Counted from the first letter of the stretch, positions 36,065 through 46,071 are shown. The stretch is DNA of 64,000 bases from Anaeramoeba ignava BMAN (GCA_028826165.1 JAPDFW010000104.1:1-64000); one strand, 5' to 3'. Numbers and translations: made by a program. The notes: generated by a model not told the origin, from the sequence alone.

Positions 36065-36137
36065 TCCCGTGTAGCTCAGTCGGTAGAGCGTTGGACTCTT
36101 AATCCAAATGTCGTCGGTTCGAGCCCGGCCTCGGGAG
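36065..36137 (+). tRNA. tRNA-Lys(CUU)
   Basis: Cloverleaf: acceptor TCCCGTG/CTCGGGA with one T:T mismatch, D-arm TAGCTCAGTCGGTAGAGC, anticodon arm TTGGA-CTCTTAA-TCCAA, T-arm GTCGG-TTCGAGC-CCGGC, discriminator G. Confidence 0.95.
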
Positions 36138-36199: not shown

Positions 36200-36636
36200 T
36201 TTTATTCCACTTTTTTTTATTATATTTATTATATTTTTTATTAATATATTTATTATATTTATTATTAATATATTTATTTATTTATTATTAATATATTTAT
36301 TATATTTATTATTAATATATTTATTATATTTATTATTAATATATTTATTCCACTTTTTTATTGTTATTATATTTATTATTAATATATTTATTATATTTTT
36401 TATTAATATATTTTTATTTTATTTATTACTTTTTTTATTTATTATTATTATATTTATTATATTTATTATTATTATATTTATTATATTTATTATTAATATA
36501 TTTATTATATTTATTATTAATATATTTATTATTAATATATTTATTATATTTATTATTAATATATTTATTATATTTATTATTAATATATTTATTATATTTA
36601 TTATTATTATATTTATTATTAATATATTTATTATAT
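36200..36636. repeat. AT minisatellite (ATATTTATTATATTTATTATTAAT)n, left half, interrupted by the transposon
   Basis: The same unit resumes at 40034. Confidence 0.88.
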
Positions 36637-36885
36637 GAGAGAAAGGGAGAGGCAAAAACATCTCAAAATATTTAAAAAAAAATTCCCCTTTTTATTGAAA
36701 AATAAATTAAAAATTCTTTTGTGAAACCTGAAAATTTGAGGCCGCAAAAGGCTAATGGGGAAATTTTTATTTTTTGAAAAATCAATCAAAAAAAATCAAT
36801 CAAAAAAAATCAATCAAAAAAAATCAATCAAGAAAAATCAATCAATCAAAAGAAAAAAGAGATTAGTTGAATTTGAATGGAATAT

Positions 36886-37797
36886 TTACTTATCATCTCT
36901 TTGATATGTCATCAAGACATATGAATTCGATTTCCGGCAAGGATTAGGAATAGTCAAAGTTGTCGAATCATCAAAAACTTGAAAATCTCCAGCATTTCTT
37001 TCATCTTTCACTTCAGTCCAGAAATGACCTCCCTTTTGCTTCTTGTTCTTCTCCTTGGTGATGAATTGATCCCCAAAATGACAATGAGTTTGACATAGAA
37101 CTAGAAGGAGAATAAAAATTATTAAGTTGAATCTTTCTTGGAACTTGTATTCTTGCCATATTTTTCTTTCTTCCTTCAAAATTGGATCATAGAAGCTTCT
37201 TTTGACAAATATCATGAAAAATTTGGGAATATGAATTAAAAATTGGAAAGAACTTTGAACTTTTTGACAATGTTCACAAAATAGGAGATTGTTTTCATCA
37301 AAGTAATTTTTTGAGAAAAATGAATTGAGCAATTCTATTAAGTTACAATCTTTTTCACTTTCTAAACTTAGCAGTATACCTGTTTCTTGAGGAAAACTAA
37401 AGGAAAAATGTTTACATTCCAAGCATTTCACTTTTTGAAAGAAAAATAAGAAAAAATCAATCAAAATAATTTTGTTCCATAAATCTAAGATGTGATACAA
37501 GAGATCATCTTGATTTGGAATATCTAAAATTGTTTCCTTGTTCAATAATTCAAATAAATTAATAAAAAATTCGTGTAGATCTTGTTGGTTCAAATTATCA
37601 AAATTGACAAAATGCTTACCTACTTCCTTTCTCAAATCTTGGACTTCTATATATCTTTCGTTTGAATTAAAAATATCCCATAATTTTTCTGAAATATCTC
37701 TTAAAAGAAGAAGATTTCTAGCCAATGTCCTGATCAAAATCTGGACAATTGATGCGATATAACATGAATTTCCAGAGTTGGGGATTGTTTGAATTAC
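36886..37797 (-). CDS. Ubiquitin-specific protease (peptidase C19) domain, transposon cargo
   Basis: Cys box TIPNSGNSCYIASIVQIL just 5' of the called ORF, QQDLHEFF, CLEC/CEHC zinc ribbon, PKFFMIFVKR, His box GGHFWTEVK...FQVFDDS, SYVLMTYQR. The frame is open from an AG acceptor at 37798-37799. Confidence 0.88.
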   Translation of the reverse strand, partial: VIQTIPNSGNSCYIASIVQILIRTLARNLLLLRDISEKLWDIFNSNERYIEVQDLRKEVGKHFVNFDNLNQQDLHEFFINLFELLNKETILDIPNQDDLLYHILDLWNKIILIDFFLFFFQKVKCLECKHFSFSFPQETGILLSLESEKDCNLIELLNSFFSKNYFDENNLLFCEHCQKVQSSFQFLIHIPKFFMIFVKRSFYDPILKEERKIWQEYKFQERFNLIIFILLLVLCQTHCHFGDQFITKEKNKKQKGGHFWTEVKDERNAGDFQVFDDSTTLTIPNPCRKSNSYVLMTYQRDDK

Positions 37798-37870
37798 CTA
37801 TAAAACACAATATTCAAAGAAAATCAGAAGAGAAGCACACAAAAAGAAAATATTTTCTTTTTAGTTTTAC

Positions 37871-39519
37871 CTGGTTTCTCTATTCAAATTTTGGTTTAAA
37901 GGGAAGTAAATTCTGAATTTCTAATTCAGGAATCTTGTTAGATTTGTTTTTCTTTTCAATTTGTTGATTTTCGTTATAAATTTCTATCATTTGATTTTTC
38001 TTTTCTTGCTTTTTGTAATTTTTGGCTCAGAAATGGTCGCTTTTTTGGTTTCTTCTTTTTGTTGATTATCAACCTCCTTTTCGTTCTCCTTTCTTGAAAT
38101 TGGAAGATTTTGAGATATTGGCTGTATTAATTTTGAGTGATTTTTCATTCACATCTTGAATCTGAAAATTATGATTGGCTAAATCTTTATCATAAATTTG
38201 AATCTTCTTGATTATTGGAATTCTTCTTTTACGTCCTCTTCTTTTTGGGATTAAACCAGGCTTCAAAATGACCTTTATCATAAAAATAAATGAGTTTTTC
38301 AGATATGGAATTCCTTGTGTGTAGGAATATTTAATCGAACGGTCAACTGACATAATTGTTGGAAAAAGTGTTCTTCAGAGTTTTCAGATAATTATCTAAC
38401 TCTTCAATTGTTCTTATATTCCCAAAAGCTTGATCTATTTCTTGAAATATTGCCGAAATGGGCATCACTGTAATTTTTACCATGATTTGTGAGAAAATAT
38501 CCAATGGTAATTTTCTTAAAATTAGAAGAGAAGAGTTGAATTATTGTTGGAATCACCAAATTATTTTTGAGACTAGATCCTCCATCACTAAAAATTGAAA
38601 TGCTTTCATAAGAATTTAGTTTTTCGTTGTTTTTGATCTAAAATTTGTGCAAATTTTCCTAAAGATTCCATCACAAATACCGAATCCTAAAACAAAATTA
38701 AGATTTTTTTAAGTTTTTCTTGTAAATTCTAAATTCTAAATTCTATAACATTACTTTGCTTTTCTCTTCTGAGATATAATCGTAATATTCAAATTCAGTT
38801 CCTTGAATTAAACATATATTGAAGATAACCCATGAATTTTTGATGTAAAATTCTTGAGTATTCCACCCATCTCGATATTCTTGTATGTTCTCTCCGAAAT
38901 CTAAAATAATAACTAGTTTTGTGGGATCTTGTACTTCATCTTTAAAGAAATTTCTCATCATTTGAACTTTATTTCTGTGATTCGCCACTTTTTGAGGATT
39001 AGGATTTGCACACTTTTCACATTGGAAGAAAATTGGTGTATTGTGTTTCAAACAGAAATAATGACTCGAATAAAAGCAAAATTTTCTATAATCTACATTG
39101 GGTAATGAATCAGATATTTGCTTGAAAATCCTTTTTTTAGAGAGGCCTGTTCTATAAGTTGGAATTTCTTTCCTGGAATAAAAATCTGTGTTTGAGAACG
39201 TTTGTAAATGTTCTAGGATTCTAAGTAAGGCTGATTCTTTTGAATCAAAGTTGCATCTTCCTTCATTCTTCTGTTGCTGTAAATTCAAAGGAATAAGAAG
39301 GCGATGATGTTGTGACCTACAATGTCTTTGAATTTTCCATTTAGAGATTCCTTGGAGTTCTTTATCGCATATTGAGCAATATACAGAAAAATTGGTCTCA
39401 TTCAAAGTAAGAAATGAATTCTTGTGGATAAATTGCTTTACTGTTCCATTTACTTCCTTTTTTAGGTTTTTTTTAATCTTTGATTCATAATTTATGTGTA
39501 AAACCCCAATATTTTCCAT
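37871..39519 (-). pseudogene. Sola2-like DDD transposase with an N-terminal C2H2 finger and C-terminal linker; disrupted by frameshifts and stops (decay or assembly error)
   Basis: CSIC..RHCRSQHH finger; CEKC; ILDFGEN (D1); intron after SEEKSK, then DSVFV; SIFSDGGSSLKN (D2, about 38590); HGKNYSDAHFG (D3, about 38470); IRTIEEL; KRRGRKRR. Confidence 0.72.
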
Positions 39520-39813
39520 AAACTTCTAAATCCTCATGTTTCTTCTTGACCAAACCAACAAAGATTTCCAAACTCGAATTATTTTTGATTTCAATTTTCT
39601 TTTGGAGAAAGAAAATAGTAGAATGATTTTATTTCATTCCTCAAGAAAAAGATGAATGAAATTTCTTTCCGGAAATTTTTGAAATTGATTATTTTTCAAC
39701 TTGAAAAAGCGCAAATTTGTTTGAAAAAGTAACAAAAAGTGACATTTCAAAAAAAAAAAGAAAAGGAAAAATGGATCAAAACAAGCAAAAATTTTTCTTT
39801 TAAATTCAAATTC

Positions 39814-39952
39814 AGGAAAAAAAAAATTAAATAAGATCTTTTATTAAAATTATAGGAAAAAAAAATTTAATAAGATCTTTTATTAAAATTATAGGAAAAA
39901 AAAAATTTAAATAAGATCTTTTATTAAAATTATAGGAAAAAAAAAATTTAAT
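39814..39952. repeat. Subterminal direct repeats of about 40 bp (AGGAAAAAAAAATTTAAATAAGATCTTTTATTAAAATTAT), 3.5 copies
   Basis: Copies start at about 39814, 39854, 39893 and 39934. Confidence 0.85.
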
Positions 39953-40033
39953 TGAGAATAGAATAATTTTTGGGGCATGAAAGGCTTTCAAAGGCTTTTT
40001 TTTTTATTTATTTTTTTGTGCCTCGAATCTCTC

Positions 40034-40500
40034 ATATTTATTATTATTATATTTATTATTAATATATTTAATATATTTATTATTATTATATTTATTATAT
40101 TTTTTATTAATATATTTATTATATTTATTATTAATATATTTATTATATTTATTATTAATATATTTATTATATTTTTTATTAATATATTTATTATATTTAT
40201 TATTAATATATTTATTCCACTTTTTATTTAATATATTTATTATATTTATTATTAATATATATTTATTATATATTTATTATTAATATATTTATTATTAATA
40301 TATTTATTATATTTATTATTAATATATTTATTATATTTATTATTAATATATTTATTATATTTATTATATTTATTATTAATATATTTATTCCACTTTTTTT
40401 TATTATTATATTTATTATTAATATATTTATTATATTTATTATTATTATATTTATTATATTTATTATTATTATATTTATTATATTTTTTTTTAATATATTT
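40034..40500. repeat. AT minisatellite, right half
   Basis: Same unit as 36200-36636. Confidence 0.88.
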
Positions 40501-40533: not shown

Positions 40534-42247
40534 TTATTTATATTTTTGATTATGTAATTCATTAGCAATTGTAACTAAATTAGGTACAGATTCATTTAAT
40601 TGAAAATAATCCATTGCTATTTCTAATTCATTTATAATCTCTTTTGTCAATTTAAATCCATTATCTTTAATTTCATTTGTATATAAATAATAAATCAAAA
40701 TTTCAAAAGCTTCATCACTTAATTCACTATAATCTGTAACTTTATTTGATTTATCTTCAGTCACAGATAAAAACATTCCTCGATATAATTCACTTCTTGC
40801 TATCAAAACTAATTTATGAACTAGAACATTCTTATTACCTCTTTTGATAGTGAAATCTTTGCTTTCTTTATCATAATACATTCTCTTCATTGCTTCATTT
40901 AATCCTTCTTTCCAAAATTTATATCTCTTCATTTCTTGTTTTGAATCAATATCAATATCATAATTCCCATAAATCATTTCCAATATTTCTTTTGCTTCTT
41001 TTTCATCTTTACTTTGAATTAATAATTTAAGATTAGTGATATTTCTCGAACCAATTCTATATCTCAAAATAATATCATGAACTGGAATCCTCTTCTGATC
41101 TTTAGTTACAAAACAATAATCACTAAACTCTTCATTTCTAAAAAAATTAACAAAATCTTCATTTAAATTTGAAATCAAAGAATAATGAAGAAATGATGTT
41201 TCATATCCACATCCAATATCATAATTAGAAACATTAAGCCAGAAATTATCAGTTTCAATTTCAACTGGATAAATCTTATTCTTTTTTATTCCCAATTCCC
41301 AACTGCCCAAAATCATTTTTCCCAAATGCAAAAAGTTTCCCTTTTGATGTTAATATCAAACTATGTCCTTTCCCACTTGAAATTCTATCAATATTTAAAT
41401 TATCAAGTAAAGGTGATCTAATCAAAGTAAAAGAATTAATATCACCACAATTATAAATCCCATTAGATATTGAATTTCCACATGAATAAACTCTTCTTTT
41501 CCCATCTTCTCCTGAAATTAGCATTATTGAATGAGCATTTCCACATTGAATATCAATTATTTTGCCTTTAGGAATATTTTTAAGTTTTGTAAGTTCACTA
41601 ATTTTTTGAATTGATGTATCTAATCCAAGTTGACCATAGCTATTATTCCCACATCCAAACAACTCTTTTTTTGAATTCAAAATAAAAACATGACTTGATG
41701 AATTTCCTGTAAAAACTTTAGAAACATCTTTCATCATTAAAATTGCTTGTTTTTTTTGATCATTTAAATTATTTCCAAGTTGTCCAAATCCATTTTCTCC
41801 AATTCCATAAACATTTCCTTTTGAGGTTAATAAATAAACTGAAAAAGCTCCACAAATCACATCATTCACATTTTGATCTTCAGGATCTTCAATTCTTTTG
41901 GAAATATTGATAAATTCATTTTGAGATTGTTTTTCTGATTTAGTGATGATATTTCCTGATAAATAAACTTTTTTTTCATTTGTTAGAATTGATATAATTT
42001 TGTTTCCTGTTGATATCTTTTCAATCTTTTCATTTCTAATTGATATTTTTTTTTTGGAATTTGTTTTATATTCTTCTGCTTTGCCATTTTGATAAAGAAC
42101 AAATATTGAATCACTTCCTATTATTTGTTTAATTTGATATTCTTTTTTTAAATTTATTTGGATTGGCTTTTTAATTTTTGAAGATGAATTTTTAAGAATT
42201 TTTGAAAAAGTATTAAATCCAAAAATTCTAATATCTTTTCTTTTCAT
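40534..42247 (-). CDS. RCC1-repeat plus tandem BTB protein, divergent paralogue, with one frameshift in an A-run at about 41285
   Basis: GENGFGQLG, GNNSYGQLG and GKNDFGQLG RCC1 blades; FSDYCF..PVHDIIL and KDFTI..VHKLVLIARSELYRGMF BTB domains. Confidence 0.85.
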
Positions 42248-42366
42248 TTTTAATTTAGGAAAAAAAAAATGAAGGAAAAAAAAAAGGAAAAAAAAAATTT
42301 TTTTAATCCAAAAAAAAAAGGATAAAAAGGAAAAAAAAAAAGGAAAAAAAAAAGAAGAAAAAATTT

Positions 42367-44076
42367 TTAATTGAAATAAACTTCAACTTCTGCAATATTC
42401 CAACTCTTTGATCCTGCAAAAAAATTCCTAGATTCTTCTCCATATTTCATTCCTAAAGGCATTTCAAAACCTTGATCTCGATATCCAAAATCACTTATAC
42501 CTTTTTTTGTTGATAAATCTTTAATCCCAATATATCCTCCATTTCCAAACCAAATTGTATTACTTGGACTTTGATAAATACATGATCCATTTAGATAATT
42601 AAACTTTGAAGGTGGATAATTTGTTGGATTTTTCAATGTAAAAATAAATGCATTTTTATCAACTTCCCATTTTCCATTTGATTTAAATCCTTTAGAAAAT
42701 CCCTTTTTCGGAACAAATCCAATTTCAGTAAATCCTCCAAAAATACAATTATTTCTTGTTTTGATAATTGCTAATGATTCTGTTTTTCCTTTACATCTTG
42801 AATAAAATTTTTTATTTGAAAATCCATCATTTATTGCTGAAAATCCAAGTTCCATCTTTTTAAATAATTCATCATTTGATATCCATTCTTTTAAATATTG
42901 AATGTAATTAGTATCTTGAATAATTTTGGATTCTTTGAAAACTGTTTGTAAGATTTCTTGATTTTCTTTTTCTTGATTTTCTCTCTTTTCTTGCATTTCT
43001 TTGTATTCTTGTGATTCTTTGTATTCTCTTTCTTTTTGTTTTCTTTGAATTTCTTTTTCTTCTTGAATTCTTTTTTCTTCTTGAATTCTTTGTTCTTCTT
43101 CTATTCTAATTTGTTCTACTTTTTTTATCTGTTCTTCTTTTTGAATATCTTTTAAAACTAATTGTAATTCTCGAAATTCTTTCTCTTCTTTTTCTCTTTG
43201 TACTTGTTCGAAAATAAACCTCATTTCTTCAATTTGTTGATCTTTTTCTTTCTTTTCTTTTTCAATTCTTTTGATTTTTTCATCTTTATCTTTTTGCATT
43301 TTTGAAGAAAATAGATAAGAAATGAATTCATTTGGAATCATTTGATTTTCTGAAATTTTTTGGATTGTTATTGTATCTATATTGATTAAGTTTTGAATTG
43401 TTTTGATTGTAATTTGATCAATAAATGTTTTCATCGTTTTCTTCTTTTCTTTTTCTTTTTCAACTTTATTTGAAACCCATTTTTCTAAATTTTTAATTAA
43501 TGTAATAATTGGAATTTCATTTTGTTTTTGTGAATCTTTTTGAATAATTTCAATAATTTTGGAAATTGATTTTTGATTTAATTTTTCAAATTTTTCATTT
43601 TCTAATATAATTTTCAAATTATTTTGAATAAATTTATCACATTTCTCTTTTAAATTAATTGATAAATTATTAAATTTTCCAAAAATTTCAAAAAAATAAT
43701 TTAAATTAAAATCTTTAATAATTAATTTTTCAATTAATTTATAAAGTAATTCTAATTTAAATTTAATTGAAAGATTTAAAATTTCAATTAAATTCAATTC
43801 ATTTATTTGAATATTTCCTGTATAAATAAATTGAATAATTTGTTTCATATTTTCTTCTGAAATTTCTTTAAAAATAATTTCTTCAACTTGATTTTCTTTT
43901 AAATAAACATCAAAAAAAGGAGATTGACAACTTAATATTGATTTATGACAATTAAATTCTTTTAAATTTTCTCCAATTTTAAGAGTAATATCTGAATAAT
44001 TTTGATTTGATTTTATTAATTTTTGATAATTTTTAATTAAATTTGAATTAATTTCTTTTTGATTAATTGAATCCAT
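42367..44076 (-). CDS. BTB-coiled coil-TLDc protein
   Basis: YSDITL..FNCHKSILSCQSPFF...FIYTG (BTB); FSAINDGFSNKKFYSRCKGK..IFGGFT..AFIFTLKN..EVEVY (TLDc). Confidence 0.9.
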   Translation of the reverse strand: MDSINQKEINSNLIKNYQKLIKSNQNYSDITLKIGENLKEFNCHKSILSCQSPFFDVYLKENQVEEIIFKEISEENMKQIIQFIYTGNIQINELNLIEILNLSIKFKLELLYKLIEKLIIKDFNLNYFFEIFGKFNNLSINLKEKCDKFIQNNLKIILENEKFEKLNQKSISKIIEIIQKDSQKQNEIPIITLIKNLEKWVSNKVEKEKEKKKTMKTFIDQITIKTIQNLINIDTITIQKISENQMIPNEFISYLFSSKMQKDKDEKIKRIEKEKKEKDQQIEEMRFIFEQVQREKEEKEFRELQLVLKDIQKEEQIKKVEQIRIEEEQRIQEEKRIQEEKEIQRKQKEREYKESQEYKEMQEKRENQEKENQEILQTVFKESKIIQDTNYIQYLKEWISNDELFKKMELGFSAINDGFSNKKFYSRCKGKTESLAIIKTRNNCIFGGFTEIGFVPKKGFSKGFKSNGKWEVDKNAFIFTLKNPTNYPPSKFNYLNGSCIYQSPSNTIWFGNGGYIGIKDLSTKKGISDFGYRDQGFEMPLGMKYGEESRNFFAGSKSWNIAEVEVYFN

Positions 44077-44128
44077 TTCTTTTTTTAAAAAGAAAAAAAT
44101 GAAAAAAAATGAAAAAAAAATTTAATTA

Positions 44129-46071
44129 TTAAATTTTGATAAAAGTTTTTTTCCTAAATTTTGTATGTTTTCATTATTAGTAAACTTATTCAATGCTGTT
44201 TCAATTGATAGATTTCCATTTATATTTTTAAATTCTTGTATATCATCTAATTAAAAAATAAATAAAAATAAATAAATTTTAAATTAAATTTTTTTGGAAA
44301 TTATAATTAAATACTTAAATCAAAATTGATTTTATTTAAATAAAGAATTGATTTTTCTTGAATATTTTCATTATCTTCAAAACCTTTCATTGCTTCTAAA
44401 ATAATTGGAATTCCTCTTAAATTCTTATCTCTAAATTTATTTACTATTTAAATATAAATATTAATTTTTAAATTTATTAAATTATATTTAAATTATTTTT
44501 TACTATTAATTTTATCAGAAAGTTGATTTAAAACAGAAATTCCTGTTTCTTGAATTCTTTCATCTTGTTTATAAAAAGAAATTTTCTCTAATACTTGATC
44601 AAATGGAAATGTATCTATTTTGATTAATTTTAATTAATTTTAATTAATAAATTCCTCTTTTTTTTCTTTTGGTTTTTTAATAATTTAATTTAAATCAACC
44701 TTTTGTTTTATCATTTAAATAATCTTCTAAACTTTTTTGAAATGTTTTTTTTTCTTTATCATCTTGAATAGATTTTTTAATTTCATTTAATCTATCATTC
44801 AACTCTTTAATTTGTTTAGCTTTTTTTTGATTAATTTCATTTATATCAACCAACTTATTATTCAAAATGGTAATTAATACTTCAAAAGGTAAAAATGAAT
44901 TGAATTCAAAACTATAAATTAAATCGGGTTGAATTCCCTTATTTTCTTTAAGATCATTAACAAATATAAAAAAATTTTCTATCGATTCATGTTTGCGTTC
45001 TTTTTTTTCTTTTTTTTCTTTTTCTTTTTCTTCTTCTTTTTCTTCTTGTTCTTCTTTTTCTTGTTTTTCTTTTTCTTCTTTTCTTGTTTTTTCATAACTT
45101 TTGTTAAATTTTTCTGCCAAATCCAAAAATAATTTTGTTTTATTCTTTGCATCACTTGAATAAATCAATTTAATAATCTTAACAAAATTTTTATCATCTA
45201 ATGTTCCAAATTTATCCTTTTCAATAAAATTACCAATATCTCCAATTAATTTTTGGCAAACAGACATAAGATAACGAGAACCAATATCACAACTTTTAAA
45301 ATAATATTCAAGTGGATTAAAGTCTTTAGTTTGTTTTTTAATAAAATTTTCAATTTCTTTTTCTATTTTGATTTTAAGAGTTGTGAGTATAAATAAATGT
45401 GCAAGTTGATAAATTTTCTCAAAATTGTTATTATTAATTTCAATTTCTGCTGTATAAATGAAATGAATAACTTTTTCAACAATTTCTGGTTCAAAATCTG
45501 GTAAGAAAAAATGTGGATTTTTTTGACTATGATTTCTTATATACATAAATGGTGATCTTGAATTTAATGTTAATTGATGACAAAGTATTTTCTTTTGTTC
45601 TTTTCCTGCATAAATGAAAAAATCATAATCTTTTTGTGTTTGATAAATTAATTTTTGATGAGCTAGAAATTCATCTACTAAAAATTTATTATATTCTTCT
45701 AATGGCATTTCATAAAGTTGATTTTTATTCATTTGTTTTATATTTTTTAATTTATTTTCATTATCAATTTCATTTTCATTTTCAAATTCATTTTCATTTT
45801 CATTTTCATTTTCATTATTACTTTCAGAATCAGTTTCATTTTCATTTTCAAATTCATTTTCATTTTCATTTTCAAAATCAGTTTCATTTTCATTTTCATT
45901 TTCATTTTCAGATTGATTTTCAAATTGATTTTCATTTTCATTTTCAAATTGATTTTCATTATCATTTTCAGAATCAGTTTCATTTTCATTTTCAAATTCA
46001 TTTTCAAATTGATTTTCATTATTTTCATTATTACTTTCACTTTCACTTTCACTATTACTTTTTGAATCCAT
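44129..46071 (-). CDS. Acidic N-terminus, BTB, coiled coil and C-terminal ARM-like repeats; 4 exons
   Basis: BTB YDFFI..CHQLTLNSRSPF..FIYTAEI. The ORF splices at ACAAAAG|GTTG through three phase-1 introns to exons encoding QDERIQETGISVL, GIPIILEAMKGFEDNENIQEK and IETALNKFTNNENIQNLG; stop at 44129. Confidence 0.8.

Follow-up and report, generated by a model that had tools for sequence, protein, structure and literature searches.

A Sola2-like DNA transposon of Anaeramoeba ignava predicted to encode a transposase fused to a USP-type deubiquitinase

The window, a stretch of 64,000 nucleotides from Anaeramoeba ignava BMAN (GCA_028826165.1, JAPDFW010000104.1:1-64000), carries transposase motifs and a USP (peptidase C19) domain side by side on the minus strand, and raises the question of whether the two belong to one mobile unit and what a deubiquitinase would do there. 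The whole element was delimited at 36637..40033 (minus strand; 3397 bp here and 3415-3514 bp in four sister copies). GAG at 36637, CTC at 40033 and the ATAT target-site duplications (TSDs) at 36633..36636 and 40034..40037 were read in the sequence, as was stated in the original prediction, which had been made from the sequence alone. Short imperfect terminal inverted repeats (TIRs) were also present, formed by the left terminus (36637..36656, plus strand; the 3' end relative to the gene) and the right terminus (40018..40033, minus strand; the 5' end), with 6 identical nt at the start, a 3-nt offset and then a second matching block. Three subterminal direct repeats of ~40 bp (39817..39948; repeat family D15) were the same in all copies, and a 14-bp tandem repeat 3' of the stop codon (36774..36850) was variable in copy number, which accounted for most of the length variation among copies of this family (family 1).

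Copies were sought in the entire A. ignava genome (42.8 Mb, 147 contigs). Family 1 comprised five full-length copies, 95-98% identical and on different contigs, and the four outside the window had identical end bases, were bordered on each side by ATAT and lay in unrelated flanking sequence. Both termini were identical in all five copies; the terminal words occurred at these five loci, and the left end additionally, in identical form, at one relic of family 1 (C73; L006:1378-1813), which has an internal deletion joining the left end to a partial USP exon at 88% identity. Two more Sola2 exon-2-like matches were located near this relic. The USP was present in five of five family 1 copies and so travels with the termini, as had been proposed, rather than being a syntenic host gene. 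Movement of family 1 was recent, since its four other copies differed pairwise by 9-24 substitutions in 3.4 kb. Family 2 comprised six copies (0.4-1% apart; ~45% protein identity), with GAG...CTC ends and ATAT duplications. Of the full copies in these two families (five in each), 10 of 10 were flanked by ATAT. Because ATAT was invariant at all sites, the duplication was tested by repeat register: with 4 bases removed, the tandem repeat around the insertion returned to register in 6 of these 10 copies, and with other lengths removed in at most 1 of 10. ATAT is a true 4-bp duplication. The insertion target usually lay within A-ATAT-T, and the window copy sits inside an AT-only tandem repeat. The element is a cut-and-paste DNA transposon that has recently moved as a unit, inserting at and duplicating ATAT.

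The predicted transposase motifs were located on the minus strand as DFGEN (D at 38901), SDGG..KN (38586) and HGK...D..FG (38466). When the transposase core was used as query, word-index protein searches returned no match; relatives were found only by exhaustive profile search, which gave 553 at E <= 0.001. The three Asp were near-invariant in the 97-111 relatives aligned, as was the HGK motif. One relative (P0060, E 1e-11) was Heterostelium (Polysphondylium) PPL_04538, with motifs matching Sola2_PPa-1; Sola2_PPa-1 and Sola2_DFa-2 have the DF..N, SD.G and HGK...D motifs of the element (supplement, PMC3627910). Direct pairwise comparison of the element with the PPa protein, using a model lacking part of the core, gave a weak match (21%, E 0.002). 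The structure model of family 3 had pLDDT >90 over most of 120-510, and its best matches were the DDD domains of Metnase/Mos1 (Z 12.6, rmsd 2.8 over 166 residues). DUF7869 was matched by 20 of 97 transposase relatives. Pfam, which contains no Sola2 model, returned no match for the element transposase. Neither the Sola1-type motif SD.C.GQN.N nor DUF7869 was found in the element's own protein (P0002 matched UCH only), and the element motifs were SD.G..[LI]KNN and HGK. Sola2 termini are said to have been given as GRG...CYC by Bao et al. in 2009; the GAG...CTC ends of families 1 and 2 and of two metagenomic relatives fit this pattern. The target site of Sola3 is TTAA, and all TSDs read here were ATAT, so the element did not show the Sola3 target. 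In a quick IQ-TREE tree the element was not cleanly separated from long-branched Sola1-like rows, which attached beside the A. ignava clade with support of only 85-87. The element was filed under the Sola superfamily as putatively Sola2-like, by its motifs, ends and 4-bp TSD; together with the copies that share its ends, these bear out the proposal of a Sola2-like mobile element and extend Sola2-like elements to metamonads. None of the results named in the original prediction as refuting it was obtained.

Exon boundaries were assigned on the minus strand from the majority of the five copies (ATG at 39745, stop at 36886; 331 + 275 + 306 = 912 codons). Exon 1 (38755..39745; 331 codons in the intact C90 copy) would encode an N-terminal domain, a C2H2-type zinc finger (39304..39378, shared by four families and also conserved in the C142 homologue), a CxxC..H motif and the first catalytic Asp (38901). 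Intron 1 (38687..38754; 68 nt, GT-AG, putatively phase 0) is used by public gene models, and its position was common to families 1-5. Exon 2 (37871..38686; 275 codons in three sister copies) would encode the second Asp (38586), the HGK motif, the third Asp (38466) and a basic linker. Intron 2 (37798..37870; GT-AG, putatively phase 0; 73 nt here and 76-78 in the sisters) lies between the linker and the USP. Exon 3 (36886..37797; 306 codons in two sister copies) would encode the USP catalytic domain. The N-terminal ~90 residues (39470..39745, minus strand) may form a ubiquitin-like (beta-grasp) domain, but the resemblance was weak, with Pfam matches below cut-off to PB1 (E 0.16, family 1) and the Crinkler N-terminal domain (E 5e-4, family 3); a similar region was also seen in relatives without the USP.

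Along the frame a zinc finger comes first, followed by the RNase H-fold DDD core, a basic linker and the USP. Phase-0 GT-AG junctions were present in all five family 1 copies, and every exon was open in at least one real copy. Two family 2 copies read 905 codons (905 aa) as assembled, with both introns at the family 1 positions. Family 3 (C40) lacks the second intron, and the C-terminal half of its transposase (SDGG..HGK) and the USP were read in a single stop-free frame. The USP had been described as a separate, co-oriented gene; it is instead the last exon of the transposase gene, because there is no Met of its own before the catalytic Cys, the same phase-0 intron sites recur in other families and family 3 is intronless at this point. 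From the splice signals we infer that two introns are removed and one transposase-USP protein of ~912 aa is made. Searches were performed with single exons, with an alignment of single exons on the natural intronless ORF, or with public proteins; exons were joined only for the codon counts and the tree. The NCBI models KAJ5079105, KAJ5069497 and KAJ5069443 join the same exons, with products named as ubiquitin hydrolases only, and several annotated 'ubiquitin carboxyl-terminal hydrolases' of A. ignava are transposases.

This layout was compared with known systems. Polysphondylium pallidum PPa-1/4/5 and Dictyostelium fasciculatum DFa-2 are Sola2 elements with 4-bp AT-rich TSDs and short imperfect TIRs (Bao & Jurka 2013, PMC3627910). 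Like the element, they have a DDD transposase (DF..N, SD.G, HGK...D.HF), TSDs that include ATAT, and an extra 3' module (Fanzor). Their Fanzor is a separate gene, whereas the USP here is fused in frame to the transposase; further differences from PPa are the strictly ATAT TSD, ~21% identity to the PPa protein, the C2H2 finger and the possible ubiquitin-like N-terminus. Ginger1 transposases carry OTU or Ulp1 at the C-terminus, and Ulp1 is found in Mutator elements (PMC2836005). Ginger1 resembles the element in having a cut-and-paste transposase with a C-terminal cysteine protease of the ubiquitin/SUMO system, an intron-split gene and a 4-bp TSD, but belongs to a Gypsy-integrase-like DDE superfamily, and its proteases are OTU (C65/C85) and Ulp1 (C48), not C19. 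Trichomonas vaginalis XP_001314237.1 joins transposase_11 to Peptidase C19 (PMC2836005); this places a DNA transposase with a C19/USP domain in another metamonad, although that transposase is of IS4/IS5 type rather than Sola, and it is a single protein record noted there in passing. UCH and OTU domains occur in Helitron2/Helentron subgroups (PMC11417382), and Helitron VTD deubiquitinases show activity towards K48 chains, their proposed role being to keep transposition proteins from degradation by the proteasome (PMC9741609). These transposon-borne deubiquitinases include the same Pfam family (UCH) but reside in rolling-circle elements with RepHel, lacking a DDD transposase and TIRs or a TSD of the element's kind. 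Mutator/MULE elements likewise pair a cut-and-paste element with a protease of a ubiquitin-like system (Ulp1, C48). Zisupton elements also carry Ulp1 (C48). Both Mutator/MULE and Zisupton differ from the element in their SUMO protease family, their superfamilies and their 8-9-bp TSDs.

The original prediction gave the protease cargo of DNA transposons as mostly Ulp1/C48 or OTU and knew of no C19 USP in Sola. No Sola element with a protease was found in the openly accessible literature, and a transposase-USP pairing in Sola appears to be new. C19/USP domains were already known on DNA transposons (PMC2836005, PMC11417382), so that only the Sola host is new, given the Trichomonas transposase and Helitron2. 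Unrelated transposons (Ginger1, Mutator, Helitrons and now Sola) have repeatedly gained ubiquitin/SUMO-system proteases, and for cut-and-paste elements the role of such proteases in transposition is not known to have been tested.

The prediction of one new element family was partly upheld: related elements with a USP, unreported for Sola, do exist, but they make up at least five USP-bearing families rather than one. The single loci C26 and C67 had the same layout as the other families. The five USP-bearing transposases formed one clade (SH-aLRT 97), and the element USPs were mutual best matches within the genome, ahead of host USPs; these two results indicate one old capture, in which the USP was evidently acquired once, in the ancestor of the five A. 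ignava families, and maintained. No USP fusion outside A. ignava was found among the best 150 of the 553 transposase relatives, in seven metagenomic loci of relatives (where the positive control worked) or in a metagenome scan, and among the genomes searched the fusion was found in A. ignava only. Two close metagenomic relatives, on short eukaryotic metagenome contigs (L054:74-2664 and L056 about 196-2779), were complete elements of 2.6 kb, ending in GAG...CTC and flanked on either side by ATAT, but lacked the USP. Sola2-type reading frames with no UCH match nearby were also present in A. ignava (C142, C51, C64, C62). Because sister elements with the same ends do without it, the USP is an accessory and takes no part in the cutting chemistry. 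A language-model search suggested that the USP might come from giant viruses, but this was not borne out by the three viral USPs compared, whose scores (22-39 bits) lay below those of host USPs (49-57).

The predicted USP motifs were found on the minus strand, with the Cys at 37764, a QQD box, four zinc Cys, the His at 37026 and Asp-Asp at 36972/36969. Pfam UCH scored 43 bits for the window and 129 bits for family 3 (cut-off 23.9), and the USP profile matched human USP8 (E 6e-34) over the Cys box, QxD box, finger zinc ligands, His box and Asp pair. The predicted USP structure had a pLDDT of 42, too low for use. Among the three readable families the USPs shared 23-41% identity with only 14% of columns invariant; the oxyanion Asn, the Cys, the QxD Asp, the four zinc Cys, the Gly-His and the last Asp were invariant in all three. 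The Cys box of family 1 departs from the canonical form, and in family 2 the usual first Asp is replaced by Ser, as in some active USPs (USP30, USP16). The invariance indicates that the catalytic residues have been kept under selection since capture, as does a rough dN/dS between families 1 and 2 of 0.42 in the USP (0.23 in the transposase core; dS near saturation). From what is known of the family the USP is probably an active deubiquitinase.

We consider it moderately probable that the locus is an autonomous Sola2-like transposon encoding an active transposase-USP fusion in which the USP would most likely be self-protective. By analogy with the DDD family, the fusion protein would bind the ends, excise the element and insert it at ATAT, leaving the 4-bp duplication. 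The tethered USP could trim ubiquitin chains off the transposase itself or partner subunits, and the de-ubiquitinated transposase would escape proteasomal degradation long enough to finish transposition. Self-protection of the transposase or its partners is favoured because a deubiquitinase tethered to a foreign protein in the nucleus would most simply serve to remove that protein's degradation signal, and a comparable role was proposed for the Helitron deubiquitinases; even given an active fusion, this role is held with slightly under half of our confidence. It is doubtful, though conceivable, that an Anaeramoeba-only Sola lineage depends on the active fused USP to counter a host pathway that ubiquitinates transposases. 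If so, the element would be direct evidence that a protist uses ubiquitin to defend itself against transposons, and an arms race would be recorded in the five diverged USPs. The element offers an independent capture with good controls: it is compact (3.4 kb), recently mobile and strict in its ATAT target; there are five diverged USP-bearing families, with the active site kept where readable (three), and USP-less sisters with the same ends. A single Cys mutation would suffice to test the role of the USP.

The strongest alternative accepts the same active fusion but has the USP act on host proteins at DNA. At donor or target sites it would remove ubiquitin from histones or repair factors and so ease access or direct the repair of the break. 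The transposase would bring the USP to DNA ends, the closest solved relatives of the element USP include USP8, USP15, USP2, USP21 and SAGA Ubp8, and a DNA-repair role was proposed by Bao et al. for the Ginger1 Ulp1/OTU proteases (PMC2836005). Similarity to the solved USPs is generic, however (~25%), no nucleosome- or repair-targeting motif was found, and the insertion sites are simple AT-rich repeats. Action on host proteins is judged somewhat unlikely.

Under a further alternative the USP would be a captured passenger, now a pseudo-enzyme or a mere ubiquitin-binding or scaffold domain. In its favour, the element USPs show divergence (UCH 43-129 bits) and, by the rough dN/dS given above, faster evolution than that of the transposase core, and the USP-less sister elements described above also fit such a passenger. 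The invariance of the catalytic and zinc residues across USPs of such low identity, and the open frame in families 1, 2 and 3, argue against it, and loss of activity is considered improbable.

Less probable again, to the point of being very hard to credit, is that the transposase and USP are made separately, or that intron 2 is usually retained and a transposase-only form dominates. In families 1 and 2, read-through into intron 2 reaches a stop after ~20 codons, which makes a USP-less isoform possible. Separate production is opposed by the lack of a Met before the catalytic Cys in the USP exon and by family 3, which without an intron there cannot make a separate USP. One fused protein, predicted from the splice signals, is preferred.

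The window copy differed from the majority of five by 23 coding indels and 45 substitutions, compared with 1-5 and 5-10 in the other copies. As assembled, these indels leave the transposase frameshifted and two USP stretches out of frame, so that the description of the USP as catalytically intact is apt for the family but not for the window letters. The A. ignava assembly was built from Nanopore reads and polished with Pilon (PMC11550330). Homopolymer runs held 14 of the 23 indels, mostly deletions, and short-read contigs (collapsed over copies) had the majority's lengths (2264 and 1117 nt, compared with 2250 and 1115 in the window). The USP exon of the window copy had 28 private substitutions, 23 of which were common to the deleted C73 relic. 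The frameshifts are most likely assembly errors; the shared substitutions point to mis-polishing, with gene conversion from the C73 relic as another possible source. Real inactivation of the window copy was rejected as the main reading, given the homopolymer indels, the majority-length short-read contigs and the substitutions common to the relic. The reading of the element as a segmentally duplicated host USP gene, or as a chimera of the assembly, is refuted: the assembly does come from polished Nanopore data, with errors in the window copy, but five plus five full copies have exact ends, TSDs and unrelated flanks, and the 2264-nt short-read contig spans intron 2 together with transposase and USP Cys-box sequence.

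Several minor observations were made. The A. ignava genome contains ~140 UCH matches, many inside very long open frames (>2000 codons), and at least 14 of the loci belong to these transposons. The C142 locus (L049:4-3510, minus strand) is one ORF of 1168 aa, without introns or a USP; it has an intact Sola2-type DDD core, low-complexity ends and a C-terminal CCHC knuckle, and may be either another family or a domesticated transposase. C61 (L051 / P0017) is a 744-aa annotated model in which tyrosine-recombinase-like, Harbinger-like DDE and Sola2 core pieces, identified by eye, appear to be joined, perhaps as nested elements. Within the window, a tRNA-Lys(CTT) gene (36065-36137, plus strand) lies ~500 bp from the left end of the element, and the neighbouring host genes (40534-46071, minus strand), which are of RCC1/BTB and BTB-TLDc type by eye, are unrelated to it.
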